Below, one piece after another: positions 17,814-56,428 of a DNA stretch of 64,000 nucleotides. Numbering within the stretch: the first letter of the stretch is position 1; every line of letters starts with the position of its first letter. The stretch is from contig OX337236.1 of NCBI GenBank assembly GCA_946965045.2, forward strand, positions 2,914,001-2,978,000, written 5' to 3'. Source of the stretch: Epithemia pelagica (lineage: Eukaryota > Protista > Bacillariophyta). Both the position numbers and the translations under genes were made by a program. The notes below the pieces were generated by a model. The model searched no databases, was not told the origin of the DNA, and saw only the letters and a program-made list of their open reading frames with translations.

Positions 17814-20800
17814 ACACTGGGTACCGAGGGTCATCATCAAAGTCACAAGGAGCCATGTTCTGCAGTGATAAGGGTGCAGAGTGCACCATGTACCACGAGA
17901 ACCATCAACTGGGTCACGAGTCACGACGAGAAAGCAACTTTGCTCTATCAGCTCTCTGATTTTTACATTCGGAATTCGCATTTTCATTGTGCATTCCCAG
18001 ATTTTCAGATGCCGGTTGGCATCAATCTTCACTTCTGACGACTGCCGCATTCGGAGCTCCGCAATTCGGTGCATATCATGAATCATACAACTCTCTATCT
18101 GCAAGTCGATGATGGTTTTATGCTGGTCATATCACTCGGTACTGGAACATCATGGTGCCTCCTACTATACTTGTTCCGAAACATGTCAACGATGTCGGTT
18201 ACTCCCGTGGCTTACTGCCGTCTGTCATGAACTTGGATCAACTCTCCAAACACAAACTTCGATGGTTGATCCTCTCATAAAATCTGATTCCACAAGTTTG
18301 CCGAGCCAATTGCATCGAGCAACCTTATCAGATTTTGAGTGAGATACCGGCCGAGTAATCAAGAAACCACTGTTTGAAGTACCATGAAGTTGTCAGCTGC
18401 CGTCGTTTTTCTTGCTGCGACTATCCACAAGAATGCCGCCGTGGAAGATAGTACGCATATGGTGTTTCCCGCTCCAGAACGCTCCCAACAGCAGCAACAG
18501 CAGCAACAGCAGAAGCTGCAGCAATCAAACAATACTGATGGCGCATCTTCGCTGTTACCGCCAGTGCTTGACGCCGGTCCCGACTCCATCGAACCTTGCG
18601 CCGTCGGCGTTACCAACTGCGACGAAACCGCGTTGGTTTGCGACGAAGAAAATGCTACCGATGTGATTGTAAGGCGGGGCGTACGTGGCGCTGGGTTCCA
18701 TTCGTACCTTCTCAATTCGACGATGGGATTATTGGGGGTGCAGTACTACGTCTGCGCTTGCAACATTTATTCGGCCCTTTTTAATCGCGCAATTCTTTCT
18801 TCCGTGCGAGCCGACTCGATCTGCAAAATCAATGAGCACCGGTTGCCCCTGCCGAAGGATTCAAACGAAACGTGCCCCGACGGCGCGGCGAGCGACTGCC
18901 TCAGTTACTGCAAGGACGTCACCTTCGGCGGGGACAGTTGGAAGGAAGCGAACACGCCGCCAGAGAATGGCGGTGGGATAGGCCCAGTCTCGGCTTTGGC
19001 CGACAATTCGACCGGTTGCGTTTGCTTCTGGGCCGACACGCGTATCCAAGGTTGCACCCTTCCACCTCCCAGCGATGATCCACCTCCCAGCGATGATGAT
19101 GATGGTGTTGTATCTGGCGCACACAAACCACTCGGCGCCGTCACACTAACTGCTGCTGCCGCTACGCTGCTCGGGATGGTGGGAAGCCATGGCCTTCTTT
19201 TTTGAGTTATAATTGATTGGTGGTAGTCTACTGCTCTAGCGAAACAGAATCAGGGATTCCGGCACTTACACAACTGGAGAATCAAGCGGGAATAATTTAG
19301 GCCTATGCTTATTACTGCCCTGTCCGCCAAGAGTGGTGTGGAGGAAAGTGGCTGGACCAAAGGCAGGCCTTATGTCTGAGCTAAAAGTAAAAGATATAGT
19401 CCAAGCACATATAAACTGAGCGTAGATCACAAATTTTGCTTTTGCTGCCTCTTGCTTAGCAAGCCTGGCAAGCAGCTTTGCAGCGCGGCGCCAAGCGCAA
19501 TGAGCTATGGCATTTGCCAATTTCCCCTCTTTCTCTTTGTAAAATATTTATTTCCCTTCATCATCACAGCAGCGATCCGGGGAGATCCAGACACCCCCGG
19601 ACTTGAAAAGCTTCGGCGTAAGCTAGGCTTGACGAGACCCGCGGAAGAATGCGTCACATTGTTAAAGGAGCTACTGCAGGAGCAAGAAGAGGGGAAACCG
19701 TCGTTGTCGGTGAACGATCCTCTGGAATACCTACCTCATTGCAAGAAAGGATGGCACCGTCCACGTGGGGTCCACTCCGAATCCGATGGTGCCAGTACCT
19801 CCAGGCACCTTCGCCAGGCACGCTGATATTTGACCATGCTGGCGAAACAAGTAAGAACCGATCTTTTAATAATAGTTTGACATAATATTTTTATTATTAA
19901 TTGATTTAAATCGAGCACTATCTAAATTTATAGCATAGGCACAGCTGCCCGCATTCAGCTGCGAAGGCTGCACTTTGAGGGAGCATCAATCTGCTTGCTC
20001 AACTAGGTATCCATGCAATCAGATGCAGGATCTTAATGTGCTGAGCACAAAGAGGCCATGGTCAGCTTGCCTGCGCGCAGCACAGCACTGAGCACTTGAA
20101 TCCTTCACGGACATTCGGTCGGAAGAACAGACCTTTATCACGGGTCGCACGTAGATAGCGGCAAATTCGTTTGACTGCCACCTCATGGGATAGCTTCGGA
20201 TCGTTACAGAACCTAGCACATTGATGCACAGCGTAGGATAGATCCGGGCGAGACATGGCTTGAAGATAATTGAGGGAACCAATCACGGCACGGTAGTTCC
20301 AATCTTGCTTCCGAGTGGGGCCATCAGAGTCCGCGTGTAGGATCTTATTGTCTTCGGCTGGAGTGTCATGCATCTTGAAATTTTCTTGAGAGAGGCCCAG
20401 ACCAAGATGATTCAAGCAGTTGTCGATCGACTTCTGTTGTTGCAACTCAACACACCCATCTTCATGTCGAATGAATCGGGCTCCAAGATAGTCTAACAGT
20501 GGACCATCGTCTGTCAGGTCAAAGGACTTTTGGAGCAGCGCTACTTCTCGGTCAATGGCTTTCGGATCCGGAGAGAAGAAGGCTGCGTCGTCAATATACA
20601 GGACGAGAAGAACGACGCCCTTTGAGAATAAACAGGGATCAACGTTGGATTGTTTGAAGCCTTGCTTGAGGAGTCCATCTTTTATGTGCTCATGCCAAGT
20701 CACTTGGCCGTCTTTCAAGCCATACAAGTTTTGTTGGAGCTTCAGCAAGTGTTTATTCGGGTCAAGGCCGGGCAATGTGGTACCTTTTGGCAATTGCATG

Positions 20801-22130
20801 AAGATATCAGTCTTCACCTTTGCTTGCGTGTACGCCATAATGAAGTCGATCGATCGCATGTCCCATCCCAAAATCAACGCCTGGATGAAGATGCACCGGA
20901 CGGTTGGCCATGCAACAACAGGGGAAAAAGTGGACCAGTAGGTATCACCAAAAACCTGTCTGTGGCCTCCAGCACAGAGGCGAGCTTTCCATTTAATGAT
21001 TGCTCCAGCTGGGTCCTTTTTGCGCATAAACGACCAAACCATGGGGATTGGTTTTGCGTTGGGTGGAACTTGAGCTTTATGCACGATCTTCCAATGCTTC
21101 AATTCGGCATGCTGTTTGAGTTCCTTCACCATGGCCTGAATGAACTTGTCGCTATCTTCTTGTTGGAGAGCGATATGCAAGGGCATAACATCTGGCTTGA
21201 TGGCGGCGGTGCTCATCATCTGCAGCAGTGCCAAAGGATGATAGTCGGCCAAAGTCTTGGCCACATCCTGAGCCATAAAACAACAATGATAAGCAATCAA
21301 CGACAATCGAGAAGGGGGACGCACTTGTCGACCGGTCCTGGTTTGCCCTGTGGGGGCAATGTCCACTGGGTATGGTTGTGGAGTCTCTTCTGGTGGAACA
21401 GAAGCTATCTGTGGCTCGGGTTCGGCATCAGGAAGAGGAGCTGGATCGTCAGCAGGCACTTGCGGAATTGCACCCGTCAAGAGATCGGGTAATTCGAGCA
21501 AGGCCTGTGGGATGTTGTTCCCAAAGTTGAGTAAGTTGGATTCTTGTTGTCGTTGTTGTTGTTGTGTACGTGATCGTCGTGTCAAGGGACGCGAGATCAG
21601 ATGGTCAGATCTATTTTCATCTCCTTTGTGCACTAACGCCTTTTGCTTCCAAATGCTTGTGTCATGTTGTTCGTTCTTCACTGTCTCGAATTTGTCGTCA
21701 TACACGCAATGGAATTGTGGGCTTACAAGACCAGTTTGCGTAGACAGGATGAGAGGAACAGAAGCAGCATGATGGGGCAAGTGACACAACAATACACCAA
21801 CTCGAGATCGTTCTGCCCATTTGGGATGAGGGCTTCCTGTTTGGAGTGGAGCTTGGAGCACATAAACGGGGCAACCAAAAGGATGAAAGTGTTTGGTGTT
21901 TGGTTCCACATCGGAGTTGGAAAAGATGGAGATGGGAGATTTTGCTTTGTTGTTACGTGGGAGTGCATTGCGAATGTTTGTTGCATGCTTCACCGCTTGT
22001 GGCCACAAATTTGCTGTGATGGTTTTCGGCCATCTGTGAGCAGCATGAAGGATCATCGTTCTTGCGCTTTCGGTAAGGTCTCGAATTCGCCTTTCCGCGA
22101 TCCCATTCTGATGGTGGGCTCCCACGCCAC
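17814..22130. repeat. Segmental duplication, copy 1 (copy 2 is 59697 to beyond 64000; offset ~41.88 kb)
   Basis: Colinear near-identity starts at ACACTGGGTACC and runs through the surface-protein gene and the Copia RT/IN. Confidence 0.95.
18384..19205 (+). CDS. Secreted Cys-rich, putatively GPI-anchored surface protein, copy 1 (273 aa)
   Basis: N-terminal signal (MKLSAAVVFLAATIH), poly-Q, multiple Cys, a PPPSDD linker and a hydrophobic C-terminal tail (LGAVTLTAAAATLLGMVGSHGLLF). No family was recognised. Confidence 0.75.
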   Translation: MKLSAAVVFLAATIHKNAAVEDSTHMVFPAPERSQQQQQQQQQKLQQSNNTDGASSLLPPVLDAGPDSIEPCAVGVTNCDETALVCDEENATDVIVRRGVRGAGFHSYLLNSTMGLLGVQYYVCACNIYSALFNRAILSSVRADSICKINEHRLPLPKDSNETCPDGAASDCLSYCKDVTFGGDSWKEANTPPENGGGIGPVSALADNSTGCVCFWADTRIQGCTLPPPSDDPPPSDDDDGVVSGAHKPLGAVTLTAAAATLLGMVGSHGLLF

Positions 22131-24076
22131 AGAAAGAAATTGTTTGGAGTGCGTTTTTGACATCGTTCACAAACTCCTTGTCCGCAAATCGTCCATTGTC
22201 ACAATGATAATGCTGGACGGTAACACCATGCCGTTGCGCGAATCTTTCGAACTCGTGTTTTGCTTCCAAGGTTTCTTCGGTGGTAATGGCGTGCATTAAA
22301 TGCACGTAAGTCAAATCGGACGCGTGGTCAACAAACACTGTGGCACCTTTGAATCTTTTCTTGGTCGGTTGGCCCTTTCCTGTTGGTACGAGACCAGGAA
22401 CTGGGGATTCCAACTGGTCCATGCTCACGACTGCGCCAGGGACTGTTGACGTGCGAATCTTCGGATCCACCTTGTGGGTGCACCAAGGTTTCTTGTGCGC
22501 TTTCCCATAGAGGCAGCTGGGACATTTGGGAGGCGCAACCTTTGTGAACTGTTTCGGGATCACGCCCTTTTCTGCTAGTTGTTTCAGTTGTTGAAAGGAG
22601 CAGTGACCCAATCGCTCGTGATATTGCATCAAGAGGTCTTGGTCCGAACGCAACAATGGTTCATCTTCCACAATGGGTGGCAAGACATTGGGATCCGTGG
22701 TGAAATCGGTTGTCACTCCCTCGGATGGTGACGACCGGATTGGATGAATCGGCTGGGGCTCTTGGTCTTCATCATCGGGCGGAGGATCAGGAGGCGGACG
22801 CTCAGGATCATCTTCATCTTCTGAGTCAGAGACTGGGTTGGCAGGCATTGCAAGAGCCATGAATGCACGGAAACGACGGAAACCAGGGGCTGTAAAGCAC
22901 ATACCGACGTTGTTCTTGTTGAGCGGTACGTATTTGCTCACTTTTTGATCCTTGGTACTGAGCCACTCTAACTCTATGCTCATACCGTCAATTGAACAGC
23001 GAGCTTTTGTGTCTCCTTCTACTCGTCCTTGTCGAACAAAGACTTGGGGCACCATAATGTTGAGAGGGGCAGAAGGTAAGTGCCGCACATCTCGCAATTC
23101 GATGGTGTGAATCATGTTCAAGTCATCTTCATACTTGATTGGAACGGTTCCTATGCCTTAGGGCATGACAGTTTCTCCATTTACGCCGAGCAAGGCTTCC
23201 TTCATTCTTTCTTCTTTGGTCAAGGGACGGTAGGATGTGAAGGCTCTACGGTACTTCCACAGGTGATGAGAGGCACCAGAGTCGATGAGAAACTTGTCGG
23301 CGTCAGAATCGAAGACGGCAGTACGAGGACGGTCATCCGAGCTTGTGGTGGACGTGCCATTCATAGCCAAATCAATCAATGGATTCTTGTTTGGGATGAA
23401 CAAGGATGCCAATTGTTTGGCCTGGCGGAAGAATGACTTCTTTTTGGTCCTATCTCGGGTGCGAGTGGTATCAACGCAACAATCAACGTCTTGGAAGTGA
23501 AACGTTTTGTTGGCTTGTTTGGAAAGATGACCCACTGCAATCCACCGAATCTTTTGGTCAATTTGCAGCGCCGCGAGACATAACAATATACGAGGCAATT
23601 TGATGGTGATGTCAACTGGGAGACGGCGGCCCACACTTGATCTGTGGATTCGAGTTCGGGGCGGACGACGTCGGAAAGGCTTGTTGGCGACTTTGAATGG
23701 TTTGGTTCGAGCGGAGAAAAATTTCACAATCCGCTTGATCCACGACAGAACCTCATGAAACGCGACAATATTCATTTTGATCGTAAGAAAAACAACAAAC
23801 GGCCAAAATGCCATGAATGCATCCCATGAGGGTAGCAGTCATTCACTGCCATTCTTGATGATGGCTGCAAGAGCATCGGCCAAATCATCAGTATCGAACT
23901 CGCCGCCAGGAAGGATTGCGGCCATTCCCTTTTTGAGCTTGTCCACATCGACAGCAACTTCGGCGGCCACACCAGAACCAATTTACTTCCTTCGTACCTT
24001 TTATTTCCACGTAGACTCTGGTACTAAAGCTACGGCCCATTTTATTGAACCATTTTGGTTCAATATCGCACACCGA
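20062..24076 (-). mobile_element. Truncated Ty1/Copia element (protease, integrase, RT; no RNase H, no LTRs seen)
   Basis: Protease FLIDSGASHH; GAG-pre-integrase HERLGH..C..C; integrase HCDNG and QNGIAERRIR; RT KWKARLCAGG, YGLK, LYIDD. The ORF breaks at GFKC, where the RNase H DAD motif should follow. There is an in-frame stop at 23158. Confidence 0.9.
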
Positions 24077-24345
24077 TTAACGCCACACGTAAAGAACGGG
24101 TTTAAGCTTATGAGAGCAGCATATAGTTGTCTCCCATAAATTTTATGGGCGTCAACGTGCTGCTCGAATTGTTGTCTCCCTTACTAAAACACTAATCCTA
24201 CCTGTGTTAAGCAATGACACTTGTGTCATTTTTCTCCTCATTCATCTTGACGACATTCATTCATTCTGTGAATGGTACGATCAATTCGTCGTTACTTTCA
24301 TTCTATATCACTTTCTTGTTCATCCCCACCTCCAAACTGACGGTC

Positions 24346-24978
24346 ATGAACGGTGAGTATATACTTGATTCATCAATTTCTTTGATACATTCGCACCTCA
24401 TGTTTGTTATGTTTTCCACTTTAGGACTCATTGATTCCATCGAGATTGCTGAGACGTACCTCGAAGAAGACAACAATCAAGCGCGTTCGGGTGTGATGGT
24501 TCCCTTTACCCTCAAGAAATCTCGAGTCATGATTACGGGTGAAACAGGCACTGTTATTGACGAAACCGCAGAAGCCACCGAGACGAGGTATCTTCCTGAG
24601 GAGTATGCGTCTTCCGAAAGTGTCCAGGTGATTCTTCACGAATTGAGCAACAATACTCCACCCTCCCAAACCCATGGCTACATGTATTGGGAGAGTGTGT
24701 GTGGAGTATGCCAACAAAATCCCTGCGTCATTGTTGACAATCTGCCCTATCTTCACGAACTCGTCACGCACATGAAAAACAAAGGCGAGACGAACCGCGC
24801 CATTCGTTACCAGCTCTATTGGCGCTTGTCAAATAAGCTTCACGGTCCCCTTGGACGTGGCCACCGTGTGCAACTCCCCGATTGTCTTGTTCAGTTTGTC
24901 CGTGACAACTTTCCTAACGAGAACCCAGAAGAAAAGTACGTCGGCTTTCAGGCAGGTCCCATCAATCACGACGAATAA
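24346..24978 (+). CDS. Passenger gene with a P2X7 C-terminal (ballast/NANOR)-like domain; probable 72-nt intron at 24353-24424
   Basis: ATGAACG|GTGAGT...CACTTTAG|GACTC gives a 186-aa product ending CGVCQQNPC...NRAIRYQLY...LHGPLGRGHRVQLPDCLVQFVRDNFP...YVGF. Confidence 0.6.
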   Translation: MNGEYILDSSISLIHSHLMFVMFSTLGLIDSIEIAETYLEEDNNQARSGVMVPFTLKKSRVMITGETGTVIDETAEATETRYLPEEYASSESVQVILHELSNNTPPSQTHGYMYWESVCGVCQQNPCVIVDNLPYLHELVTHMKNKGETNRAIRYQLYWRLSNKLHGPLGRGHRVQLPDCLVQFVRDNFPNENPEEKYVGFQAGPINHDE

Positions 24979-25155
24979 ACAAGCGATACGGTAATCGTTC
25001 CTAAGCTCACATTATTCTCTTACTTAGATTATTTAGTTGTCGTTTACAATTCATGAATTTCTCCACTGTTCTCTGTACTTTCGTTGTCATGATCATTGTC
25101 ATTCTCTACGTTCTCGTTATTTGTGTCTTCTTCTTCGTCGTCATCCTCTTTCATA

Positions 25156-27896
25156 TCATTTGGTCCGCGATTTGTCCGCTTTCTCTTCCTTGTAAACTCT
25201 GGAGACAGTCCATGCTTCTCTCGTAGATCCATTATAATTGGGTGGTTTTTTTTTTGTTGTGTACTTGTAGCGACTTCCCGGAGACAAAGCCGGACGACAC
25301 ATGAACATCTCTCTTCCCTGTGGTGAATGGAGAATTTCGAAGCAAGTGTGGTCTGTAAATTGTGGGAGCGTATGGATTTTCCAGCCATCCTCTCTGTCAT
25401 CCTTGCATGACACTAAATGTGCCACGAGTCCACACTTGGCACATCGACCTACGTTGGTAAACATTCCTTTCATGCCGAGCTCTTTGCGCCTCCACCGATA
25501 TTCCAACAAGCAAACTGTGCATCCGACACGTTTGTTCCCTTCCAATGGCACTGGATAATGCCTATCCTCACATGTTGGGCGACTGGCAACTCGAGTCCTC
25601 CTTGCTAAAGCGTCCACTTCTTCTTGTGCAACATAGCTACACATTGTTTGCGCAACAATAGTGTAGAACGTATGTCGCGACAGCTTGGTTCGTCTTGATC
25701 GTACTCGATCCCCAGACGACATGTTCCATCCGATGTAAGCATTCAATAGCATCACATCCATTATTGCCAATGCTGACTTCTTGTACCACTTTTTGTAATG
25801 TCCATGGGTTGCAAAACCTCCGAAATGGGAACGCATCTGATCTCCATGATCAATGCCCCCCATATTGTCCTGATAACGTATTAGAGGCATTGGACAATTG
25901 AAGTCCTCTTTATTTGGTCCCACTTGACGCTGCACTTCCCCTTTGCCGTTGCTTTCATAGCTGGAAACGAAATTGACGACTTTCGAGTCCACCTATTGGC
26001 CGATAACAATTCCATTCACTTCGTCGTGAGCCAGGTTGATTGTTCTGCGATTTGTTGCTGTTTTTCCAATGTCATCAGCGTCTTACTCCACCCCACTCGG
26101 TTTGTCCTCACAGTACCAGTAGCAAGGATCTTCAAACGGTCACGGAGGATAACCAGTAGCTGTGGGGCTGCGTACCGGTTATCCATAAACAAATGGCAGA
26201 ATCCGTTGGTTCCCTTGTGTAATTCTAATGCATAACATGCATTGACAACTGCTTTCATGGTCGTAGGTAGTTTCTTTGCCTCCTCTCGTATGTACGAGTT
26301 GGTCGCATTCTTTCCTTGATACACGTCGATATGAAGGATGGCGTATGATCTGGAAGAAGCCATGATGAAAAAATCGACCCGGAATTTTACCGGTTTATCT
26401 TTATTATACTGTCGGACGGGGCAGTATCTTGAGCGGCAGCCGATTCCTCCTTCATCGAAAGCCAAGTCTTCTGGTATTTTGAACGATCGTTTCGAAGCTC
26501 CATTTACTGCCTGAAGTAATTGCCGTTATTGGTAGCACTTGTCACCACCTCTCCCAGCACTTTTCTTTTGTGGATGAAACGCACCGCGAATCTGACGAAA
26601 TCGAGCAAGTCGCATGTATCTGGAAGCCCATCCCTCACTATCCAAAATTTCTACCGAAGGGAGAGCTGTCCCTAAGCTATACATCCGATTGGATGTTTGA
26701 AAATAGGTGGCATATCCACCTCCATCGATTGGTCGAAGAGACATCATCAGAATGATGCCTAAGAACCGCGTCATTTCTTGTTCCGTTACATCTTGCCACT
26801 TCTGTGAATGGAAGTAACCCCTGCGCCCCATCAACTTGGGACAGATTTTCTCGTGAAAATACTGATTGGTTGCGGCGGCCATATCGGAAATGAGAGCGGT
26901 TGATATGCCTCCGACCACACGCAAACTCTCCAACGGTGTGGTGAAATCTTCCGCAATACCTAATTTCAGACCGTCTTCTCCGCTAAACATATTTCTGTTG
27001 TGACGTTCCTTTCCAATCCAAGAGAGTCCGTTGTCGGAAGCATCAATAGACTTGTAATGGAAGTGCAGGTTGTCAATCAGAACTTTTAGGTTTGTTGTAT
27101 TGTTTGGGTCATCGTCGTCTGAATCTGAATCGCCAACACCGTTGTGCTCGTCGTGATCAGTCACGTCGTTGTCCTCGTTGTAATCGTTCTCATCTAGTGG
27201 ATTCTGAGGCCGTGCAGCTGATTCATTCAACTCAAGTTCGAAACCACCTTGATGGTCTTCATCAGAAGACGAACCACTGTCCTCATCGAGATTACCTACA
27301 TTCGTGTTGCGCTGTTGTTGTCGGGTTGTGACACTTGTTTGTCTCGTCGAGGCGGCGGCACTTGTTTGTCTCGTCGAGGCGGCCGTGCTCGTACTCCCAA
27401 ACAGACGTGTCGTTAGTTGGTTCATTGGAGTGTTATTGTTATCAGCATCTCCATTATCGACTCCATTATTGGCTTGGGCGTTATCTCCGGGAGAGGGTCC
27501 GACTTGTGGAGCCGTCATAAGAGTAGCGCGTCCTCGAGCCCACTCTTGTGTCGACGGCAGGTTTGTGTTTTGACGTGTACGTGAATTGCGGCTCGATCCA
27601 CGTAGAGAGGAGTTACTAGCATTCTTCAGTGCATCCCTCCTTTGTGCTCGTTCGGCTGTGGAAGGAGGTGGTGGTTGTGCTCGGCGTCGTCCCTTGTTAC
27701 GTCTGGGTGAACGTCGAACCGAAGGGGACTGTGTGATATTGTGGCTGTTCGGGTCGTTTCCTTTATCGGGTTGAGAAACATAGTTGAACTTGGTTGTTGG
27801 GTTCCAGTTCTCTGAGATTGTTGAGATTGAGTTGCCTGGTTCGTTCTATTAGTACTAGGAGGTGCATGATATGCTTCGATGAACTGTCGAAGCCTC
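25156..27896 (-). pseudogene. piggyBac transposase (DDE_Tnp_1_7-like), fragmented; N-terminal part continues at 36286-36910
   Basis: Motifs AFDE, CPVRQYNKDKPVKF, LFMDNRY, VRTNRVG, MGGIDHGDQ, KKWYKK and a C-terminal CxxC...CxxC...H...C. In-frame stops at 26526 and 25993 and a frameshift near 26050. Confidence 0.88.
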
Positions 27897-28680
27897 TGTT
27901 ACAATTCTCTTGGAATTGCAGTGGCGTTGATGCTCGGTAGAGCAGACAATCAGGTAGTCACCAACCGATACAAACCTCTCCACGGGTAAGAGAGGAAAGC
28001 AAGTCGTAGTCTATCAAAAGGATAGTCGGGACACAAAAGAGGATGTGATAAATGGTGATATTGTTAGATTGTGTGTTGATTACTACGATAGGTCTACGTG
28101 AAATGTTCGGTCCTGCCAAGGGTCATGTGTCATAGGTTCTTGGCGGCAACAGGTTTGGAATAGTTGGAGTTGATTCATGTGATGTATATGACATGTATAT
28201 GTGGACGGATAACATATATAGGGTCAACAGCTCTTGCTTTGGATTGGCATAGTTGTTTTCATGGCGCGCAGCTTGTTGACAATTTGGAGATTGTGGGAAT
28301 GGAAATATGGTCTCGCGTGATTGTGTGTCGTGCTTGGGATACTTAGACCGTTGGGTCGGATAGATGCCGACAGCGCTCGGATGTCGCGTGGGCGCGCTCG
28401 ATGATTTCGGGCGCGTACGCTTAGGGCGTTAGTATAATGTCCGAGCAACGGCCAAATTTACGTCCGTTGTAATACCGCACGACCCAGTTTAGTCTTGAGA
28501 GTGAGTTCGTCAATCTATTCTCACTTTTCATGATTTGCGAAGAAATATAGGTCAATATAGCGCAAAGCTAGGGAACATAGCTCGAAGCTAGATGGCATGA
28601 TGCGATAGCACGAGGCTATGTGACATGGGGAATCGATGAGATGTAGAATCTAACCACCATAGACAGTGAGAATTCTAACA
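27897..28680 (-). repeat. 3' LTR (784 bp)
   Basis: Direct repeat of 35499-36280, with about 7 substitutions and one 2-bp indel counted by eye. Confidence 0.95.
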
Positions 28681-31600
28681 CTCCCCACAACTCGTCCTTT
28701 CAGCCTTGTCATCATTGGATTTGTTGAGGTCTTGAACTTCTCCTTTCCAAAACAACAAGGGCTTGAGCATGGGCCAAATAGATACGAAATCCCAATGTTT
28801 GCTAAGGATATCGGCAGGGTTGGTCTTTCCATCTTTCCAGTAGAATGCAACATACTTTGCTGCGATGGCTTCACGAACTCGGTGGTATGACAGAAGATGG
28901 TGTCTCTTGGATAGTATGGAATGAGGAATGGTTGCATTGAGCACAACAGATCTGTTATCTCCGTACATGTAACTTCGCTCTCGGATAGGTACTCCAAGGT
29001 AGCGGAGAGAATGTCGTAATTCTGTAATCTGATCTATTGCTGTCCTTGCAGCCACAAACTCGGATCCATAGGTAGCAGTTTCCACCGTGCTCTGTCTCTT
29101 GCTGTACCAGTCAATAGGTGTTCCGTTCAACAAATGTAGAACAGCAGTGACGGATTTACCAGTGACTATGTCATGCATGAGATTGGCATCAACATAATGA
29201 GTTGTGGTAACATAGCGGCCAAGAGGTGTTGGGCAGTCTTCAGGAATACGTTCACTTGCATTCGAATAGACAGTGCGAGTCCAATCAAATTCTTGGGTAG
29301 GAAGACTTGAATAATCAGGCTCTCCAATCCTAAATCTGATTGCGCCTTCTGGGAGATGTGCAAGGTATCCATAGATACGCTTGGCTCTATCAAGATGTCC
29401 TTTCCTCGGAGCAGCACGAAAGCGTGATAGCGTCATTGTAGCGGTGAAGACGTCGAAACGACCAATAGTGATCACCCATTGGAGTTGTCCAATCAGAGTT
29501 TGGAAATGGCTAGTACCTTCTTCATCAAGGAGCTCAGAATCATCCAATTCAGGATGGTCTCCACCAATAAGAGGTGTTTTGGCTTTCTTGGGTTTCGCCT
29601 TGAAGATTCGTTCGAAAGTGTCCATCATCTTACCAATGTAGCGTCTTGGATCTGCTACTAATGTTCCATCAGAATCCTTGGTGTAACAACATCCCAAGTG
29701 GAAATCAATAGGTCCATCTCCTTTGAGTTTGAAGTTGTATTTCTCCTTCAGGATCTTGCAGATATTCCCAGGATCAGTAGAAATAATGGCTAAGTCATCA
29801 ACGTATACGGCAATGTATTCGTAACAGTCTTCTCCAGGTGCTTTCCTCATCCAGATATCCGGATCTGCTTTGCTTGGTGAAAATCCCATGTCTGTCAAAA
29901 CATCGAATAAGACATCATGTCAGCGTGCGCCTGATGACTTCAATCCATAAAGTGCCTTGTATATAATCAGGATGTGACCTTCTAATTCCTTGAATTCAGG
30001 TCCTGCGACAATGAAGATTTTCTCCCCTGTCAAGGCTTCCAGATATGCGTTTCCAATATCTGCTCCCCATATTTCCAAGTCATTCAAAGTACCCAGGAAT
30101 AAGGCAATGCGGAGGTTGCGAATGGAAACAACACCTGAATAGATTGTCTCAACAGGTTCTTTTGTGAGATGTCCATCTGCGACAAGTCTTGCTTTATGTC
30201 GTCCATCATGTTTTACGTCAAAGACAAGATGTACACGTATCTTATGATGTCCTTCAGGTGCATTGGATACTTTCCCTTTAATGAAGATGGCTTTCCAAAA
30301 ATCCTTGAATGTCTTGTAGGACTGGATCTGTGACAATTCTAATTCTGTTGCATCCTGCCACTTTGTGTTGCCATGCTGTTTATCAAGAGCGACAGCTTCC
30401 TCATAATTGCGTGGTACTTGTAATCCAAACTTATACTTGACGGAATGGTGAACTTGTTTAATCCTTGACTGTTTGGTTGCTCGAATGAGACGTTTGCTTG
30501 TTTTGACATAACGTTTCAAATGCTTCCATCCAGGTTCGTTGAGTAAACCATGTTTCTTTCCATAAATTGCTACAGTGATCGGATCATCATTGGCGATGAG
30601 TGATAAAGGTTCATAGGTAGTCTCCCCAGTTTCCCAATCAACAAGCAAATTATATTTGCTCCCCTTGTAATCTGGATCAGTTGTGTTCAGTGGGCCTTGA
30701 TGGGCAATGACGTCCCTGAACCTGAAAAGATTATCTCCAGAGGTTTGAGCTTGGTTATCTCGTTCGATATACTCCATGAGTTGATTATAGGATATCATCT
30801 CATCAACATCAGAATTTGTCTTTCGGTAGATGTACTTGACACGTTCTTCCTGTTTCGTTGCTTCTTCATTAAGATCAATGACTCGTTTGATGACACGTGC
30901 ACGGTGTCGCTCCCCATTTTCTTCTGTGTCGCATAGGAATGTGCGTCCTCTCATGTCGTCAAAATCGATCGTGGGCATTGGTTTGGATGGATCTTCACTA
31001 TCACTGCAAATGAAGACAGTGTCAGCTTGCTTATCATTGTCATCCTTCTCAGACAAATCCTCCCCTGAAGGTCGATCCACACGTAGGTTAGGTGTAGTGG
31101 ATTCAACACGGCAAACGGCAGAACGGTAGATTATCTGGTTATCCTGGGTGAGAATCTTCCAAGTAAAAGAATCACCAACGTTGTGAGCAAAACCAACCCA
31201 GTGGCCAAGTTTCTCATCAGAAGAAGATGGATATGAACCAGAATTGGGTTCAGCGGGGTCGACACGGTAGTATACCTCATCCCAGAAAGGAAAGAACAAG
31301 AGATGAGTAATGTCGGGTGGGCGTCCGGAGAGAGCCTCAAGAGGAGTGCGACCGGAATGGGTGGGTGATGATGTATGGTTCAATAAGTCACAGACATACT
31401 CAAGGCAAAGAAGCCAGGTGTTGGCAGGGCAACCAGTGGCATTCATGAGAGCGTTGGTCATACGTTTGACGGTCTGGTAACGGTTTTCAGCCTTATTCTG
31501 GTGTTGATGATAAGGTTCGGATCGATACTCCCCAATAAGCAAAGTGCGAAGAATGTCTTTGACCTTTTGAGAGATGAGAGATGAACCACCATCACTGATA

Positions 31601-32637
31601 AGAGTCTCCATGGCACCACGAAACCGGATGTTGTCCTGAAGAGTATTGACAAACTGTTTGGTTGACTTGATCCCATAGATATCAGTAACCAGAGTATCTC
31701 GACCAACAAAGATTTGTGCGACTTTACCGCCATGGTCAACAGCAGGGGTGTCGGAGAAAACCGAGTCAGTAGCAACGGGTTCATGACGTCGAGGTATATT
31801 AAGGACCGGATTGCGAGCCTTGAAATGTTTCTTGAGGGTGTCGTGGTCCAAAGTAATGCTACCATTACGTGTAGTGTGCTTGAACGTATCGGCAATAACA
31901 TCTTCAGATTGCCAACCAAAGAATGGACGGAACTTCTTCCAGTCATACGCTTCCTGGTAACGACGGTGGACAGAGGCATGAAGTGTAGGATCATTACCTT
32001 CTGCGTCAGCATAGATAGAAAAGAAGGGTGCGTCGTCAGGTCCATGATCGTATGGGAGATCCAAAAGGAGATTGAGGTTACAAACAACACGATCAGTGTA
32101 CTTCCCATAGTTGTCATATGGATGGTTTGACATACTACCATCAGTCTTGACGTGTTTCCAATCAGGATCATTGTCAGAGGGTGTGGGAGAATACGAATGG
32201 TCCAGAACACCAGGATCCCATGTGTCGGGTGACGTGAAGATGATCTGAGGTAAGGTATTCATGTCATCGTCGCTGGGGATACCCAAGGAGTGGATGTAGG
32301 CTAACCCATCCTTGATGTGAAGGGGTATAGCACGACCATCAAGTGTAGTGATGCGTTGTTTACCATCAACTTTAACAGATCGTTCGTCAACAGCAAGTCC
32401 AAAATGCTCAAATTGACCAGGAGCATGGATAGATAAGCCCTTTCCATAATAAGCATATTCATTGAAGATGCCGACAATAGGTCTATCATTGGTCTCAAAC
32501 TTTGCCGCACATGTGACGACAGGAAGTCCAGTAAGTTCATGGTTATCAATACCCACAATAGTGATATGGCGGCCAGTCTTAGAAATGATGCGCATGTCAG
32601 AACCAGCAAGTCCTCCATTAGCACCACGGTCAATCAA
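28675..32637 (-). pseudogene. Copia pol (PR-IN-RT-RNase H) split by one in-frame stop at 29920
   Basis: IDRGANGG, ISDGG, HQNKAE, KARLVADG, DIGNAYL, YVDD, YVDAN, DILSK. The TGA replaces the expected Trp of ARWHD. Confidence 0.92.
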
Positions 32638-32649
32638 TTGATTTCCTGG

Positions 32650-34362
32650 TTAAGTAGATTTCCTGGAAAACAAATAGCGTGGAACATGTCCTGCTTGTTT
32701 ATGCATGTTGGCTTTGAAAGTAACCTTCTTGCTCGTCTTGGACTTGGCGTTAGAAAGAACACTAGTCAGGTCAGTTGCCGGGTGATTGATATCAGTCGTC
32801 ATGGCTTGGTTGATAAATTGTGTAACCGGATCTGAATCATCTGGATGCTCAGGGACTACGCCAGGTGAGTCGTCATCAGATGCAACTTGGTTGGGGTCAG
32901 GATCAGGTTCCGGATCAATGTCGAGGGCATGTATTTGCACTTTCCTCGGTGTTGTTAATGAAGGTGCTTGAATCATCTTGTTATACTCAATGATCAACTT
33001 GCGATCTTCTTCAGAAAGTTTGAACCATAGGTCACGCGGTAGACTAACCTTGGACGAAGAGGATGGAGATTCAGATGTCACTTTGGTGTTGTGGACATGA
33101 TACTCCATATCATCTTGTGAGGTTATGTCAGCATCTGTATCTTGGCCATATAGTGATTCATGTTGTTTGACATGTCGACGGCGACTATGAACAGATGACT
33201 GGGTTGCTTGATCATGGTCATAAGCTGCGTCTAGAAGGAGACGGAAGTATGATTGATAGCAAAGGGATTTTGCACCGGATTTGGTGTTCACCACATTATC
33301 CAAGATCTTGACTCGGCGGAGATCAGGTACCTTTTCTACAGCTTGCATGAGGAAGGTCATCCTGGTATGATCAGGGATGCGATCAGACAATGTCACTAGA
33401 TTGTCTAGCAAACGTAGCTGCTCTTGAAAGTGTAGAAGAAATTGACGTGTTGTTCCGCGCCATGTGTCGTCAAGACGTAGATTGGAAATGTAGTTGGTTA
33501 AACGGAGGACTTCTCGTTTTGCTAGGTCGGATTCGGTATGCAAAGAGTGTAACTTCTGCAATACGGCACGTGCATCTTCATCATGTTCATGTTCACGTAC
33601 ATAGGCTCGACCTTGGTCAGTCTGAATGATACGGACAAGAACGGAGTAAGGAAATACTTGTTGCTCTTGAAAAAGTTCTTCGGCATACTCATCATCATGG
33701 GGTGGTGTGTATTTGAAATTCAGAACGTTGGATAGGCCTTGAGCCTTAGCTGTAGTCTTGAATACACGCCAGAATGAATCGTAGTTTCGTTCATCCTTGA
33801 ATACCTCATATGCAGTTGCGTCGCGCTTAGTTCCCTTTCTGAATGCTGTAAGGTCTTGTTGAGATTGGGATGCGGCAGTAACTGTGCTGACAGATTTCAC
33901 GGATGACGGTGACTTCATTGGCGAGACTGGAACTTGGCTAGGTGGTCCCTTAGAAAAATCTGTGTTGATCCTCCAAGTGTTGAACTCTTTCATCGTTAGG
34001 TTCATCCAGTCGCTATTGGATAGCTCGTCTTGAATTTCATTGGTCTTGTATATGGCCCAATAAGCCAAGAGCTTGATCTGCTGTCTTGTGGGGCCTTGTA
34101 GATCATGTGTCTGTTTGTTGACCTTGTATTGTGTCAGTTCATTCATGGATTCCTCGGTATTAGTTTGCATATACGAGATAACATGGGTAATGTTCTCAAA
34201 ACCATGGTATTTCATCCACTTCATTAAGTAGTCGGCCCTTTCCTTGGTAAAGAATTGGCAGACAGTAAATATGATGTGGTCGAATAGGTCTGTGTTCAAG
34301 ACATTGTCTTGGTTATCTTCTCCCTTAGGAGTCGTAGGTGTCTTGGGTGATTGAGGATCCAT
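32650..34362 (-). CDS. Copia gag
   Basis: 570-aa ORF directly upstream of and in frame with pol, separated by a single TAA. Confidence 0.85.
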   Translation of the reverse strand: MDPQSPKTPTTPKGEDNQDNVLNTDLFDHIIFTVCQFFTKERADYLMKWMKYHGFENITHVISYMQTNTEESMNELTQYKVNKQTHDLQGPTRQQIKLLAYWAIYKTNEIQDELSNSDWMNLTMKEFNTWRINTDFSKGPPSQVPVSPMKSPSSVKSVSTVTAASQSQQDLTAFRKGTKRDATAYEVFKDERNYDSFWRVFKTTAKAQGLSNVLNFKYTPPHDDEYAEELFQEQQVFPYSVLVRIIQTDQGRAYVREHEHDEDARAVLQKLHSLHTESDLAKREVLRLTNYISNLRLDDTWRGTTRQFLLHFQEQLRLLDNLVTLSDRIPDHTRMTFLMQAVEKVPDLRRVKILDNVVNTKSGAKSLCYQSYFRLLLDAAYDHDQATQSSVHSRRRHVKQHESLYGQDTDADITSQDDMEYHVHNTKVTSESPSSSSKVSLPRDLWFKLSEEDRKLIIEYNKMIQAPSLTTPRKVQIHALDIDPEPDPDPNQVASDDDSPGVVPEHPDDSDPVTQFINQAMTTDINHPATDLTSVLSNAKSKTSKKVTFKANMHKQAGHVPRYLFSRKST

Positions 34363-34550
34363 GGTGTTATTTGGTTGGTTCGATGTTTATTTAATGTGCG
34401 GTGTGATGTGGTTTATTTAATGTGTGATGTGCTGTGAACCCGGATGTACCACGTATGCCACGTATGTACCACGTATGTGATACCCGGATGTGTGTTGTGA
34501 TGTGCGACTCCTGGAAATTTCCGTTGATTCCGACAAATTTTCGCCGAGTC

Positions 34551-35462
34551 TCAACAAATTTTCGCCGAATTTTCGCGATTTGACGGGAATGTGTGGCGTG
34601 TTGTGCGACCAAGGGTACCCGGATGTGCGTTGAGTTTAAGTCGTGGAAAGGTTTTGAGAGGACGGGAGTTAACTATGAGTAATAAAGCTTCGGTTTCCGA
34701 ATCTCCACTCTCTTCCGAATAATCAGAGTCGTTTCCAGGCTCAGATGGGGCAGCACAAGCAACAGAAGAAGGGGTATCACCTTCAGCCAAGTGGTTCTCG
34801 ACCTCGGTACGCAAAGGGAAGATAGTTGCACGATGGTCCTCGATGGTATGGACCTCGTGGATGTAGGCAACGTAGTTATCTAGGCGTACAACGTTAGGAG
34901 GCAGAGGGCAAGTCGTCGCGTTCACGACGTAGATGGTATTGTAGTATCCAGTTGGGCGCTCGAAGGTTAGGAAGCGGAGGTGGACAGTACGGATGGGGTT
35001 GCCCGAGAGGGCGGCCAAGATGAGGCGACGCCTCGGAGAACGATGAAGTTGGTCGTTCAGACGGTCAATGTCTTCTTGGTCGACGATGTGGGTCACCGAT
35101 TGGAACTGGCGTTCGATCTGGGTCTCCCCACGGATGATCTCGGGATCGAAGGTCGAAGAAGTTGGTTGACGGAAGTACTTGATATGATCAGCAATCAACC
35201 GGGTGGTACGACGGGATCGAGAAGGGACGAGCCGACGAGGTGGACTCGGGGGCCGAAGCAACGGCGCAGGGATCGGAGCGTGAGGCTGGGTTGGAGTCTC
35301 GAATGGGTTGCTGTTGGAACTGTCGACGGAGATGTTGACCGATGTGTTGGCTGCCTTCGGCGTCGGCACCAGTTCCTGCTGCACCAGGGTATCGGGCTGC
35401 CCGGGATGCAGGTTGGCTTGATAGATCTGTCGTACAGGAGTGATAAGCTCGTTAGTATCCAT
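34551..35462 (-). CDS. Additional 303-aa ORF between the 5' LTR and gag, function unknown
   Basis: ATG-initiated uninterrupted ORF starting 36 nt after the 5' LTR, in the same sense as gag. No recognisable domain. Confidence 0.6.
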   Translation of the reverse strand: MDTNELITPVRQIYQANLHPGQPDTLVQQELVPTPKAANTSVNISVDSSNSNPFETPTQPHAPIPAPLLRPPSPPRRLVPSRSRRTTRLIADHIKYFRQPTSSTFDPEIIRGETQIERQFQSVTHIVDQEDIDRLNDQLHRSPRRRLILAALSGNPIRTVHLRFLTFERPTGYYNTIYVVNATTCPLPPNVVRLDNYVAYIHEVHTIEDHRATIFPLRTEVENHLAEGDTPSSVACAAPSEPGNDSDYSEESGDSETEALLLIVNSRPLKTFPRLKLNAHPGTLGRTTRHTFPSNRENSAKIC

Positions 35463-35498
35463 GAAACCACAAGGAAATAAGCTTTGAAACTGTTAATC

Positions 35499-36280
35499 TG
35501 TTACAATTCTCTTGGAATTGCAGTGGCGTTGATGCTCGGTAGAGCAGACAATCAGGTAGTCACCAACCGATACAAACCTCTCCACGGGTAAGAGAGGAAA
35601 GCAAGTCGTAGTCTATCAAAAGGATAGTCGGGACACAAAAGAGGATGTGATAAATGGTGATATTGTTAGATTGTGTGTTGATTACTACGATAGGTCTACG
35701 TGAAATGTTCGGTCCTGCCAAGGGTCATGTGTCATAGGTTCTTGGCGGCAACAGGTTTGGAATAGTTGGAGTTGATTCATGTGATGTATATGACATGTAT
35801 ATGTGGACGGATAACATATATAGGGTCAACAGCTGTTGCTTTGGATTGGCATAGTTGTTTTCAGGGCGCGCAGCTTGTTGACAATTTGGAGATTGTGGGA
35901 ATGGAAATATGGTCTCGCGTGATCGTGTGTCGTGCTTGGGATACTTAGACCGTTGGGTCGGATAGATGCCGACAGCGCTCGGATGTCGCTTGGGCGCGCT
36001 CGATGATTTCGGGCGCGTACGCTTTGGGCGTTAGTATAATGTCCGAGCAACGGCCAAATTTACGTCCGTTGTAATACCGCACGACCCAGTTTAGTCTTGA
36101 GAGTGAGTTCGTCAATCTATTCTCACTTTTCATGATTTGCGAAGAAATATAGGTCAATATAGCGCGAAGCTAGGGAACATAGCTCGAAGCTAGATGGCAT
36201 GATGCGATAGCACGAGGCTATGTGACATGGAATCGATGAGATGTAGAATCTAACCACCATAGACGGTGAGAATTCTAACA
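35499..36280 (-). repeat. 5' LTR (782 bp)
   Basis: Direct repeat of 27897-28680. Confidence 0.95.
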
Positions 36281-37209
36281 GCCTCTCTTTCAAAGACTTC
36301 GTTGCAACAAAGGATGACTTGATCCAGTTCGGTGGAACATTTGAGGCGGCTAATGCTCTCTTTTCCCAAAGAATGCAATAGCAATTTCCATTTTTCTTCG
36401 AGGGACATTCGATTATTTTGCCCTGAAGAGAAACAGGAGAGGCAGTTGGATTTGACCGAAAGCGACGGCAGAATTCTTGATGAAAGTTGTCGTGGCACCA
36501 GAAGTCGTCAGGTGCAACAAGCCACTTTTTGAGTAGGAGAATCGACTGCGCTGGTTATTGCCGGAAGATTTTCCTCGTGGTTTGTCCAAATGTGACAAAT
36601 GTGCAATAAGTCTTTCCAATTTGGGTGGGAGTTCTTCGATCTCATCTGTGGCGTTTTCTTGTGTCTGTGTTGTTTCTGTAGCGGCGACTGCTGCACGGGC
36701 AACGTTGGAACCCGAATCGGTGACATGTTCCTGTGTTGTAGTTGTTGTGGTAGTTGCAGGTGCAGTGTTGGTGGGTTCTTCTGAATTGCTGGGAGGAGGT
36801 GCGGCATCTTCGGTGGTATGGTCAATATCTGGTTCGATGAGCGGTTGCGACGAATTTGGTAGAGATGACTCAATTGCGTTTTGCTCCACAGGGGATGCTT
36901 CGTTCGACATTTCTTTCAGGACACCCCTTCTTCACCATGTACTCAGCTGGAATGGAAGATGTTGCAACGATCGGTCGGTCGGTGAATGATTACGAAGGGT
37001 GGGAAGTTGGGTCTTCGGCAATGGAAGATGAAGATGAGAGAAAATGAGGAAAATCGCCAATTTTTCAAAGTAACATAGCTCCGTGATATCTTCATTTCTA
37101 CTGTAGAGTATCATATACGAAGTTGTTCAGAATTTCAAGATCTATAGAACGATGAAGTCAGATCTGCATGAAATTGAATTTTGATGAAGCTATTGAAAGT
37201 CAAAGTTAA

Positions 37210-37262
37210 GGGAGTAGCGTATACGCTGCTCCCATATATGGGAGTAGCGTATACGCTACTCG
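37210..37262. repeat. Tandem palindromic subterminal repeat
   Basis: GGGAGTAGCGTATACGCT(G/A)CTC(C/G)C occurs twice, separated by ATATAT. Confidence 0.9.
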
Positions 37263-38859
37263 CTTACGAATGGCGTTAAGGGATAGGTATTGTACTCGTA
37301 GGAGTATAGGTATACATCATATCCCTCCGACTAGGTGTCCGCTTCTTAGCTCGTCTGTTTGGGCAAGACAAACCCAATCTCACAGACAAAAAAATCAATT
37401 GGAAATTTCTAAAAAAATGCTTTTTTCCAATTTGACCTACTGGAAACACGCCAGCCATCCCTTTCACATACCCTGCTCCAACTGTCAACTGTCATGTCAT
37501 GGTCCGTCTTCCCCATTCTTGATTGTCGTCCCAAATTTCGACCCACATTATTATTTTCACCATTCCCCATTCCCCATGAATGACCGATGTCAATGTCAAT
37601 TCTCCTTTTGTTATGGACAATGGACATGTACCATCACAATCCATTCTCCATCATTTGCATACCATAGACATTCGACAGATAGGCCATAGATAGAGTTTGG
37701 CCGTGCCCCCATCCTTTCTTTGTTTTTAGGAGTAGTGTTGTTGTTGCTAGTGTTTGTATCCATTTGACATCCACAACACCATGCTTTAGGCTTGTCTCTT
37801 TGTATCCACTTGACCTACTCGTGTGTTTCAGAATCATTCTCTTCCTTCTTGTGCTATGGAGCATGTTGTAGAGTCCCCTGTACTGCTTGGAAAGACAAGT
37901 CATGCTCCTGGCAACAGAAAAAGTACAAGAGGAGCAGGTCGACATCACAAGCCACTAAAGACTCAAACTGAGCGACAGATGAAAAATGGAAGGCTTCCTC
38001 ACCTAGTCCTATCTATTTGTGTAGTACAAGAATCCTACAAATGATGTCGGTTGCCACCTATGGCATCGACCAAAAATGGATGTTTATATGGCACAAACAC
38101 GTGACACACTATTCACTATGGCAAAGGCGTGAGAACCTTAAACTCGGCATTGCCCATTACAATGCAAGTATTAGACATTCTCCAGAACTTACCATCTTGG
38201 ATGTGCGACAAACATGAGATGCGCAGGGCCCAGGGACGAAGTATGAGGCCGGTTTTGGTGTTGGTTTGGTCATTGCGTTATTTTGTTGCGTCCTGCATCG
38301 ATTTTGTGGCCTCTGAACAACATAATTTTTAGTCTTGTTGAGCAGAACGCCGGCCATCTATCAACTGCCAAATCACGCCAGTCTTTCCAGACGGAAGTGA
38401 TCATTTTTGCTGGCGGAGTTGGAGTTTTTGGTGAGCAGGACAGACGATGATAGAGTTGACAGGCAGACGAGCTAAGAAGCGGACACATAGTCGAATCGGC
38501 TGTTGGCACGAATTTTTCGCCTGTGAGACAACGCGGTAGAACAAAATCTCTGATATTGTAGCGTCATTGCTGATGGGCAATGGAAACATATTCGTAGGAT
38601 TGTAATGGGACATTTGTCATCCATGAAATGATGAGACACCATGGTAAAAGAGGCATGACGAGAGGTGGTTGGGACGAGAAAGGGTACCCACGGCGGATTT
38701 GTGTGTGTATGCTTACCCACGACCGAATAATCGCCAAAACTCCGTATCGACTCAATGGGCCATTCACATGATGTCGTCGCGGAAACCTCTTACATTCAAT
38801 ACGATAGACGAACGATCGTTTGACGTCTGTCTTTCAAATAATATAGAGCCAACCATACC

Positions 38860-41775: not shown

Positions 41776-42323
41776 TAAAGCCATCGGAAAACAAGTGAAC
41801 ATCGGAACGTTCTATCTGAGCATGATTAAGATAGACTGATAGTTGCTCCTGTCATCAATCTCGCAGGTGACGGTCTTGCGGATGTATTTGTTTCATTTGA
41901 TGACGAGATAGCCGAGTATCAATAGACCCAACAAGCGGTTGATCTGTAGTAGACTAAGAGCCACAAAACCGCTGACCAGGTAGACAGACTGTATGATTCA
42001 CAATATCTCACAATGTGTCCCTGATTATAATGTTTCTACATAAGTTCTACCCTGCATCCTCTTGAAACATTGAAACCTTTTGAAAGGTCTATTGAGGTAT
42101 ACAAGAAGTTGTGCCTTCTCGGACTTGGACTTTCGTCGCGGCGCTCAACAATATGAAGATCGGAGGACTACTGCGACTTGGCACTGGTCCATGTCGTCTG
42201 TATTCGGTTCTCACACAATGTTCGTCATGTATGGCCTTCTTGTTGCGATTGGTGTTGTTGTTGTTGGTTTGGTGCTCTCGTCATGTCGTTGTTTCACCAG
42301 TGGTAGAAGCCTTTGTCGCTATT

Positions 42324-42451
42324 GGGAACCCGGCCTGAAATCCTATGCCATTGGACGAATGGATAAACCCACACACTTGTTTTTGGGATCGCTCCAGTAT
42401 CCAGCCGGGGAAGTCTCGGACATTCCGAAACATGACGATCCGAATCAGTAA
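42324..42451 (+). pseudogene. 3' fragment of GT25 (copy D) fused to unrelated sequence
   Basis: Identical to the last ~128 nt of copies B and C (WEPGLKSYAIGRMDKP...HDDPNQ*). The downstream flank continues as in copy B. Confidence 0.85.
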
Positions 42452-51294: not shown

Positions 51295-51579
51295 TCAGTA
51301 GTATCGTCCACCATGGTGGTGTTGGTTGTAGTAATCGCCACCATGGTGGCGATTATCACCGCGAGGATAGTATGCCTCGGAGCGGTGGTGATGGTAGGAC
51401 GAACTGTACGTGGGAGGAGGCGGTGATTGGTGAAAGTGCTCCACTCTGCGGCGGTACACCGCCTCACCAATGAGACGAGAAGAGGGAGGAGGTGGTGGCG
51501 GAGGCGTGTACGGGCGAGGAGGTGGCGGTGGAGGAGATCGTCCACGCGGAGGATAGTAGTTGTTGTTGTTGTTGTGTGT

Positions 51580-51610
<31 letters not shown>

Positions 51611-56239: not shown

Positions 56240-56296
56240 TGCAGATGGAAGACACGTGTATTTGGGCCTATTTGCTCTGTCATGCCGAGTGAGGTG

Positions 56297-56428
<132 letters not shown>

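Follow-up and report, generated by a model that had tools for sequence, protein, structure and literature searches.

Within a 64,000-nucleotide (nt) stretch of the Epithemia pelagica genome (G000:C9:2914001-2978000, hereafter the window, whose positions serve as coordinates), we analysed a single-exon gene for a putative cysteine-rich surface protein, the tandem copies of which differ from one another mostly in three short patches of codons. In these patches the copies have diverged far beyond the DNA that was duplicated along with them, amino acid changes are in large excess over silent ones, the same codons have been hit repeatedly, and no donor copies that could have supplied the variant segments are present in the genome. 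Since the same codons changed in three or four lineages, diversifying selection acting on exposed loops, together with a shuffling of short tracts between copies or alleles, appears to be the best reading, and one to which we give slightly better than even credence. Selection as the cause of the patch divergence is what we infer from these observations.

Copy 1 of the gene (18384..19205, stop codon included) is an open reading frame (ORF) of one exon that codes for 273 residues and is colinear over its full length with homologues of other diatoms; the gene and all its features described here lie on the plus strand. The product begins with a signal-peptide-like N-terminus covering about residues 1-20 (18384..18443), which is the same in all four close forms of the protein (the three genomic copies and a fourth form described below). 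Behind the initial M-K this segment is hydrophobic, with a Kyte-Doolittle mean of 1.26 over residues 3-18, a heuristic measure. A run of CAG and CAA codons for poly-glutamine (18486..18512) follows. The homologues of other species lack it, making the linker behind the signal-peptide exon specific to this species, and the run itself has short chance matches elsewhere in the genome. On the codon alignment, patch 1 covers codons 89-106 (18648..18701), patch 2 covers codons 128-139 (18765..18800), immediately behind the invariant motif YYVCACN, and patch 3 covers codons 192-215 (18957..19028). The Pro/Ser/Asp-rich stalk that comes next (19059..19100) varies in length in frame, by a 3-codon indel between copies 1 and 2 and by 14 codons that the fourth form lacks. 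It leads to a C-terminus (19104..19202) laid out like an attachment signal for glycosylphosphatidylinositol (GPI), in the order S-G-A, H-K-P-L-G and a hydrophobic tail of about 22 residues that runs to the last residue; the Kyte-Doolittle mean of the last 18 residues is 1.37. Going by this layout, which was assessed heuristically, the protein is probably GPI-anchored. Two N-glycosylation sequons have been gained or lost among the forms, N90 and N208 being found only in copy 1.

Three tandem copies of the gene are present in the assembly (60.5 Mb in 23 contigs), two of them in the window and the third just beyond it. Copy 2 (60267..61076) codes for 269 residues. Copy 3 (G000:C9:3016389-3017198, outside the window) is 3 nt away from copy 2, all three differences being amino acid-changing. 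A preliminary description of the window, made from its sequence, had counted 25 amino acid substitutions and two indels between copies 1 and 2 against one or two silent changes, and the codon alignment bore out this count: 25 codons differ in the amino acid encoded, two indels (of 1 and 3 codons) are in frame, and the silent codon differences number two (GCT/GCG at 18654 and AGC/AGT at 19089). The conservation that it had noted for the cysteines, the signal peptide and the C-terminal tail was likewise recovered, 12 of 12 Cys, residues 1-42 and the last 34 residues being identical in copies 1 and 2. So was the near-identity of the flanks, where the 570 bp upstream differ at 4 positions and the 2,072 bp compared of the adjacent Copia ORF at 6, and so was the clustering of the changes in the three patches. 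Among the four close forms, 25 of the 30 variable codons fall inside the patches, which make up 54 of the 273 codons and the limits of which were set after inspection of the data. Patch 2 alone holds 14 substitutions in 30 nt plus the 1-codon indel. All indels in the ORF are multiples of three, whereas one flank indel is of 4 nt. None of the four forms contains a stop codon and every Cys is retained.

In order to compare the gene with the DNA around it, we relied on the repeat that carries it. Each copy starts 570 bp inside a unit of about 42 kb, and the units were mapped by self-comparison of the window plus 80 kb around it. Unit 1 (17814..59696) has the gene as its first feature and is otherwise mostly transposon DNA; unit 2 starts at 59697, fills the window to 64000 and runs on to 101815; unit 3 starts at the window-equivalent position 101816, and the array reaches beyond the window to G000:C9:3038000. 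Over 34.3 kb, unit 1 matches unit 2 at 99.5% identity; for units 2 and 3 the identity is 99.8%, with 15 substitutions in 18.2 kb (0.08%). To judge by these identities, the tandem triplication is very young. Units 1 and 2 differ by 120 substitutions in total, of which 39 lie in the 810 aligned nt of the ORF and 81 in the other 33,466 nt. The divergence of the ORF is thus 4.8% as against 0.24% in the flank, a 20-fold difference (binomial P = 3e-33). When neighbouring changed codons were merged into events, 13 were counted where 1.96 are expected (P = 1.7e-7), and no other 822-bp stretch of the duplicated block exceeds about 9 substitutions. The excess was larger for the changes that alter the protein, nonsynonymous divergence reaching 0.059 as compared with 0.0024 in the 33 kb of co-duplicated flank (about 25-fold, P = 6e-34). 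A nonsynonymous rate about 25 times that of the neutral flank indicates that relaxed constraint cannot account for the divergence.

The preliminary description had expected a ratio of nonsynonymous to synonymous divergence (dN/dS) above 1, and here the direction held while the significance stayed borderline. The NG86 method gave 2.0-3.3 (Fisher P 0.055-0.08), and the pairwise GY94 maximum-likelihood omega, from our own implementation of the likelihood, was 2.3-4.0 (likelihood-ratio P 0.027-0.063). Taken by itself, dN/dS above 1 at P 0.03-0.08 argues against a firm claim of selection, and several other points weigh on the same side. Codon models are inflated by multi-nucleotide changes, and such changes dominate in this ORF. 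The ORF shows 12 transitions and 27 transversions as against 52 and 29 in the flank (P = 8e-4), and one synonymous change lies within patch 1; this spectrum and this silent change are as compatible with a special process of mutation or replacement as with selection. Copy 1 carries A or T where copy 2 carries G or C at 17 sites, with 6 sites showing the opposite. The selection analysis drew on four close sequences. Hypervariability is apparently not a trait of the protein family as far as its sequences indicate: 13 near-identical environmental sequences of the P0010 species hold only 4 conservative polymorphisms, and the other clusters of relatives formed at 90% identity are nearly invariant, alleles below 90% identity being such as would fall outside these clusters. 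Finally, the public run that suggests expression of copy 1 (X1, see below) is of a kind not on record.

The case for selection was strengthened by the comparison of further forms. The ORFs of copies 2 and 3 differ at positions 18667, 18670 and 18673 only, all within 7 nt of patch 1 (P = 2.5e-6 for three changes in that patch), and copy 3 has the copy-1 letters at 18667 and 18670 on a copy-2 background. A fourth form, P0001, was found by a word-based protein search on a 25.9-kb ENA contig and is 85% identical. The contig is colinear with the junction between units, and its flanks are 99.3-99.4% identical to the window while the gene region is only 95.8% identical. P0001 differs in the same three patches, with an 8-codon in-frame deletion in patch 1 and one of 14 codons in the stalk. 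Codons 134, 137, 192, 199, 208 and 215 each show three residues over the lineages copy 1, copies 2 and 3, and ENA, so that six three-state codons were seen where 0.03 are expected; codon 97 shows three states among the three genomic copies alone. In the ENA form, codons 98, 101, 131-132, 201 and 203 are in the copy-1 state, and codons 43, 61, 106, 128-129, 135-136 and 177 are in the copy-2 state. This switching between copy-1 and copy-2 states every few codons, together with the mosaic nature of copy 3, suggests an exchange over short tracts among alleles or copies, as read from the alignment, and the third states indicate that new mutation occurred in addition to exchange. The word-based search gave three relatives in all, and a metagenome scan gave only two JGI contigs that were already known. 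Neither the copy-1 nor the copy-2 protein has an exact match on record elsewhere.

Both copy forms are present in contigs of independent public runs. These runs were compared as contigs only, from which neither the expression level nor the absence of a form can be read. Run X2 (120 Mb of contigs, up to 509 kb long) is evidently diploid DNA and holds the copy-2 form over patches 1 and 2 and both forms at patch 3. Run X1 is from Illumina sequencing, as adapter remains indicate, and its 39 Mb of contigs, the longest of 19.6 kb, are transcriptome-like. It holds the copy-1 form only, exact over 617 nt at a word depth of about 2,100, which suggests that copy 1 is expressed. The flank contigs of X1 carry letters unlike those of copy 1 in the assembly. 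The copy-1 form being exact in a run with a different flank haplotype, the forms are real, and represent stable alleles and not somatic noise. Low-depth matches in biofilm metagenomes are consistent with a benthic marine diatom.

We then examined the family to which the protein belongs. An exhaustive profile search of 1.84 billion representatives returned 19 proteins with E <= 1e-3, of which 11 had E <= 1e-10, and no Pfam family was assigned to any of the 15 members that were aligned. This family, small and restricted to diatoms, includes a Corethron pennatum transcript from MMETSP, which places it in diatoms and indicates that it is transcribed in that species; other members come from marine JGI contigs of about 1 kb with complete intronless ORFs. 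The alignment contains 10 invariant Cys, with C79 and C126 in most members, and the conserved motifs PDSIEPC, QYYVCACN, ADSICKINE and LPLP. All 15 members start with a signal-like segment and end in a hydrophobic stretch that follows small residues (consensus SGA). In keeping with the earlier reading of the signal peptide and the GPI-like tail, the gene is intact and conserved, and it codes for a Cys-rich, secreted protein that ends in a C-terminal signal of the GPI type. The variable codons lie in family columns of high entropy (2.10 as against 1.57 bits, P = 0.0013), and these columns are prone to indels. Full-text literature searches returned nothing on this protein family.

AlphaFold modelling with 6 sequences was unusable (mean predicted local distance difference test, pLDDT, of 37), whereas the 15-sequence alignment gave a usable core, residues 61-230, predicted at a pLDDT of 76-95 by block (mostly 84-95) and made up chiefly of beta-strands with two helices. 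Patch 2 is predicted as a beta-hairpin (pLDDT > 90), and the variable codons lie in loops or in the hairpin of the model, from which the patches would be exposed at the surface. With this model, Foldseek gave a best E value of 0.37 in the PDB and of 0.07 in BFVD, the ESM Atlas gave template modelling (TM) scores of at most 0.24 with a blank feature search, a wide VIA-align search gave a best Z of 3.0, and the sequence-profile search of the PDB returned nothing below E = 0.47. The fold is unrecognised by these comparisons, and the lack of a match would be no proof of a new one. Three weak profile hits (P0012, P0017 and P0018) were spurious. P0017 is an immunoglobulin (Ig) V-set repeat protein that aligned to the Q-rich N-terminal stretch of the profile, and P0012 is a repeat protein that aligned to a stretch ending in YYVCACN. 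The structure comparisons lend no support to a relation to immunoglobulins (the best Ig row had a Z of 2.0), and the Fab heavy chain met in the sequence search of the PDB is an equally weak match. The most variable loop lies directly behind Y-Y-x-C (in the motif YYVCACN, 18744-18764). In immunoglobulin V domains the third complementarity-determining region (CDR3) follows YYC, of which the position of patch 2 is reminiscent. The Ig V-set and Fab matches align to other parts of the profile than YYVCACN and the patch-2 loop.

Next we searched for a source of the variation. Further copies of the mature part of the gene were sought in the whole 60.5-Mb assembly with DNA, protein and family-profile searches, and none was found. 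Over the whole genome, the 60-mers around patch 2 of each form occurred only in the copies of that form, and variant-specific 12-14-mers had only chance and GAT-repeat matches in 144 kb around the array, at the paralogous loci and in the ENA contig. Mutagenesis of the type driven by diversity-generating retroelements (DGR) was rejected: there is no second copy of a variable region in the genome, and the changes involve all four bases and are not adenine-specific. The reverse transcriptases of the neighbourhood belong to Copia and DIRS-like transposons. A process resembling repeat-induced point mutation (RIP) was rejected as well, the changes being 69% transversions, limited to 2.4% of the repeat and not of the C-to-T type.

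Four other explanations were weighed. In the first, which we regard as unlikely but as the best placed of the four, the patches are old allelic lineages kept by balancing selection while the rest was homogenised by recent concerted evolution (long-tract conversion or unequal crossing-over), which selection would keep from erasing the patches. It is another version of the explanation preferred here, with the same role for selection and a different age and route, and under it the duplication would be no clock. The four forms are indeed fine-scale mosaics, the two copy-1 letters of copy 3 at 18667 and 18670 stand in a copy-2 background, the spectrum of the ORF looks saturated, and the 3'-flank haplotype of X1 and X2 mixes copy-1 and copy-2 letters. 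However, for islands of 30-50 nt to stand between stretches of perfect identity, conversion would have had to end many times precisely at a patch border; the silent positions of conserved codons within the patches agree in 7 of 8 cases, which is not expected of very old alleles; and the novel third states cannot be derived by shuffling two types.

A little less probable, in our estimate, is a process of mutation or repair that acts locally. Diversity would be selected for weakly or not at all, and purifying selection would only remove outcomes that break the frame or change a Cys. Clustered multi-nucleotide mutagenesis, patchy mismatch repair of heteroduplexes between repeats and short templated replacement would be the candidates. 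Such a process would explain the tight multi-nucleotide clusters (those 14 substitutions in 30 nt of patch 2), a ratio of transitions to transversions (12:27) that is near that of unrelated sequence and unlike the flank, and the silent change inside patch 1, which has a chance of 0.014 at the flank rate. Against it, the remaining 33 kb of the duplicated unit, whether coding or non-coding, show nothing similar; a search of 144 kb and of the genome gave no template for any patch; the changes are neither adenine-specific, as a DGR-like process would make them, nor C-to-T, as in RIP; the patches coincide with the naturally variable loops of the family and the frame is always preserved; and the identity of the copy-1 form in an independent run argues against ongoing instability.

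As an alternative to diversifying selection, the preliminary description had offered segmental gene conversion from a larger family; paralogues would then serve as an archive, the way they do in variant-antigen families. Of the two, diversifying selection stands as the best reading. Although the changes are patchy and mosaic, as conversion would make them, the collection of paralogues gave three tandem copies only, each patch-2 form is unique to its own copies, and elsewhere only the first 97 nt of the ORF (the signal-peptide exon) recur. In the absence of donor copies, archive-fed conversion is rejected for this assembly, and we consider it very improbable. Decay of redundant duplicates under relaxed constraint, or an artefact of assembly or haplotype collapse, can hardly be the explanation either: the duplicates are young and redundant and the region is transposon-rich, but neutral decay cannot outpace the flank by a factor of about 25 in nonsynonymous divergence, the four forms contain 0 stops or frameshifts, and the forms were recovered in independent runs and in the ENA contig.

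Diversifying selection with short-tract shuffling, as preferred here, would operate on a secreted, N-glycosylated protein with a domain of about 170 residues held by up to six disulfides, probably tethered to the outer face of the plasma membrane by a GPI anchor through the Pro/Ser/Asp stalk. The scaffold would stay constant while the three loop patches are driven apart by selection, probably frequency-dependent or balancing, so that copies and alleles would show differing surfaces, charges and glycan sites. Variants would be reshuffled over very short tracts between copies and haplotypes, and new states would arise by mutation. As to the selective agent, our guess is a biotic partner that binds the surface, most likely a virus, a parasite or an algicidal bacterium, with gamete or mating-type recognition as the second choice. 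A bolder version would be a long shot: the gene as an allorecognition or pathogen-recognition locus with a new disulfide-locked fold, three CDR-like loops, a patch-restricted and perhaps targeted short-tract process that also acts on other gene families, and one copy expressed at a time.

Some features of the gene recall known systems. SCR/SP11 of Brassica is the cysteine-rich pollen ligand of the S-locus, a defensin-like secreted peptide of about 50-60 residues without a membrane anchor, the variation of which is kept by balancing or frequency-dependent selection in a recognition system. The diatom gene shares with it fixed disulfide Cys with hypervariable loops, a conserved signal peptide and extreme amino acid divergence. 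It differs in that its predicted domain is of about 170 residues, beta-rich and probably GPI-anchored (the best defensin rows had a Z of only 2.3), and in that no partner receptor gene has been identified. The immobilisation antigens of Paramecium and Tetrahymena and the variant-specific surface proteins (VSPs) of Giardia are Cys-rich surface coats with a lipid or membrane anchor, encoded by several variant genes per genome. These antigens form large families in which the Cys repeats are periodic and expression is mutually exclusive, often with a donor archive; the diatom gene, by contrast, occurs in three tandem copies, has one compact domain and lacks an archive. In Thalassiosira, Sig1 and other sexually induced genes for extracellular proteins are fast-evolving and have been proposed to act in cell-cell (gamete) recognition. 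The present gene resembles Sig1 as a diatom extracellular protein with cysteines and unusually fast amino acid evolution; in the case of Sig1 the divergence is between species or strains, whereas here it is confined to three loop patches between tandem copies, with no known link to sex.

Diatoms, which are major primary producers, face attack by viruses, parasites and algicidal bacteria, and the pennate ones have to recognise their mates; to our knowledge, almost no cell-surface recognition molecules have been described in them. The locus offers a tractable candidate, with one exon, three copies, a compact unrecognised fold and three sharply bounded variable loops, and the 33 kb duplicated with it provide a built-in neutral clock. 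Should the loops form a binding surface on which frequency-dependent selection acts, the gene could serve as a marker of resistance or compatibility groups among strains in natural populations, and the loops could also give a handle on the binders of the diatom surface. If a mutational or conversion process restricted to the patches is at work instead, it would be of interest to genome biology by itself.

The remainder of the repeat unit contains transposons, with Copia (RVT_2) and piggyBac-like (PF13843) sequences, and a piece of a gene with a Patched/sterol-sensing domain (39978-41222) that shows 0 differences between units 1 and 2. A 1,019-residue ORF for a Copia integrase and reverse transcriptase (20062-23121, minus strand) begins right beside the 3' flank of the gene. 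No pair of long terminal repeats (LTR) around it was detected within 19000-27900, and the idea that the gene is a passenger or part of this element was rejected; the similarity between units is that of a 34-kb segmental duplication and not that of an element. In the 3' flank of the gene, 4 T>C differences lie within 68 bp (19410-19477), and a 4-nt indel follows at 19728-19731. Of these differences, the X1 and X2 contigs hold only those at 19410, 19412 and 19442 plus the deletion; such a mosaic haplotype is absent from the assembly. Further along, at 25156-27518 on the minus strand, a pair of ORFs corresponds to the C- and N-terminal portions of a transposase of the piggyBac type (PF13843), which looks like a broken gene. 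Direct repeats of 786 bp (27895-28680 and 35497-36280, 98.9% identical) bracket ORFs with a Copia-type reverse transcriptase (RVT_2 at 29920-32637) and probably delimit an intact LTR retrotransposon. More copies of the 786-bp repeat are found in units 2 and 3.

The 5' part of the gene has a distribution of its own. The 570 bp upstream of the ORF (17814..18383), a candidate promoter and 5' untranslated region, form together with its first 97 nt, which code for the signal peptide, a module of 667 bp (17814-18480). At 17814 the module and the 42-kb tandem unit share their left edge. The module recurs at four other loci of the genome with 83-98% identity, namely C6:888195-888860 (98%), C6:1282466-1284653, C18:1720284-1720797 and C18:1786115-1786628. 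At C6:888195 and at the C18 loci, where the frame was followed, it continues for a few more codons and then meets a GTAAGT donor site, and downstream of the copy at C6:888195 (L015) lies an unrelated Cys-rich ORF of 268 residues without Pfam match (L015:1935-2741). A module shared by loci with different downstream genes suggests that the signal-peptide exon has been shuffled between genes. An RNA contig from a marine metatranscriptome, X6, covers 18267-18483 and then diverges; as it departs past the module, it comes from a paralogue that shares the 5' module. At C6:1282964-1284653, three head-to-tail copies of module positions 21-471 (93-94% identity) stand upstream of a truncated signal-peptide exon.

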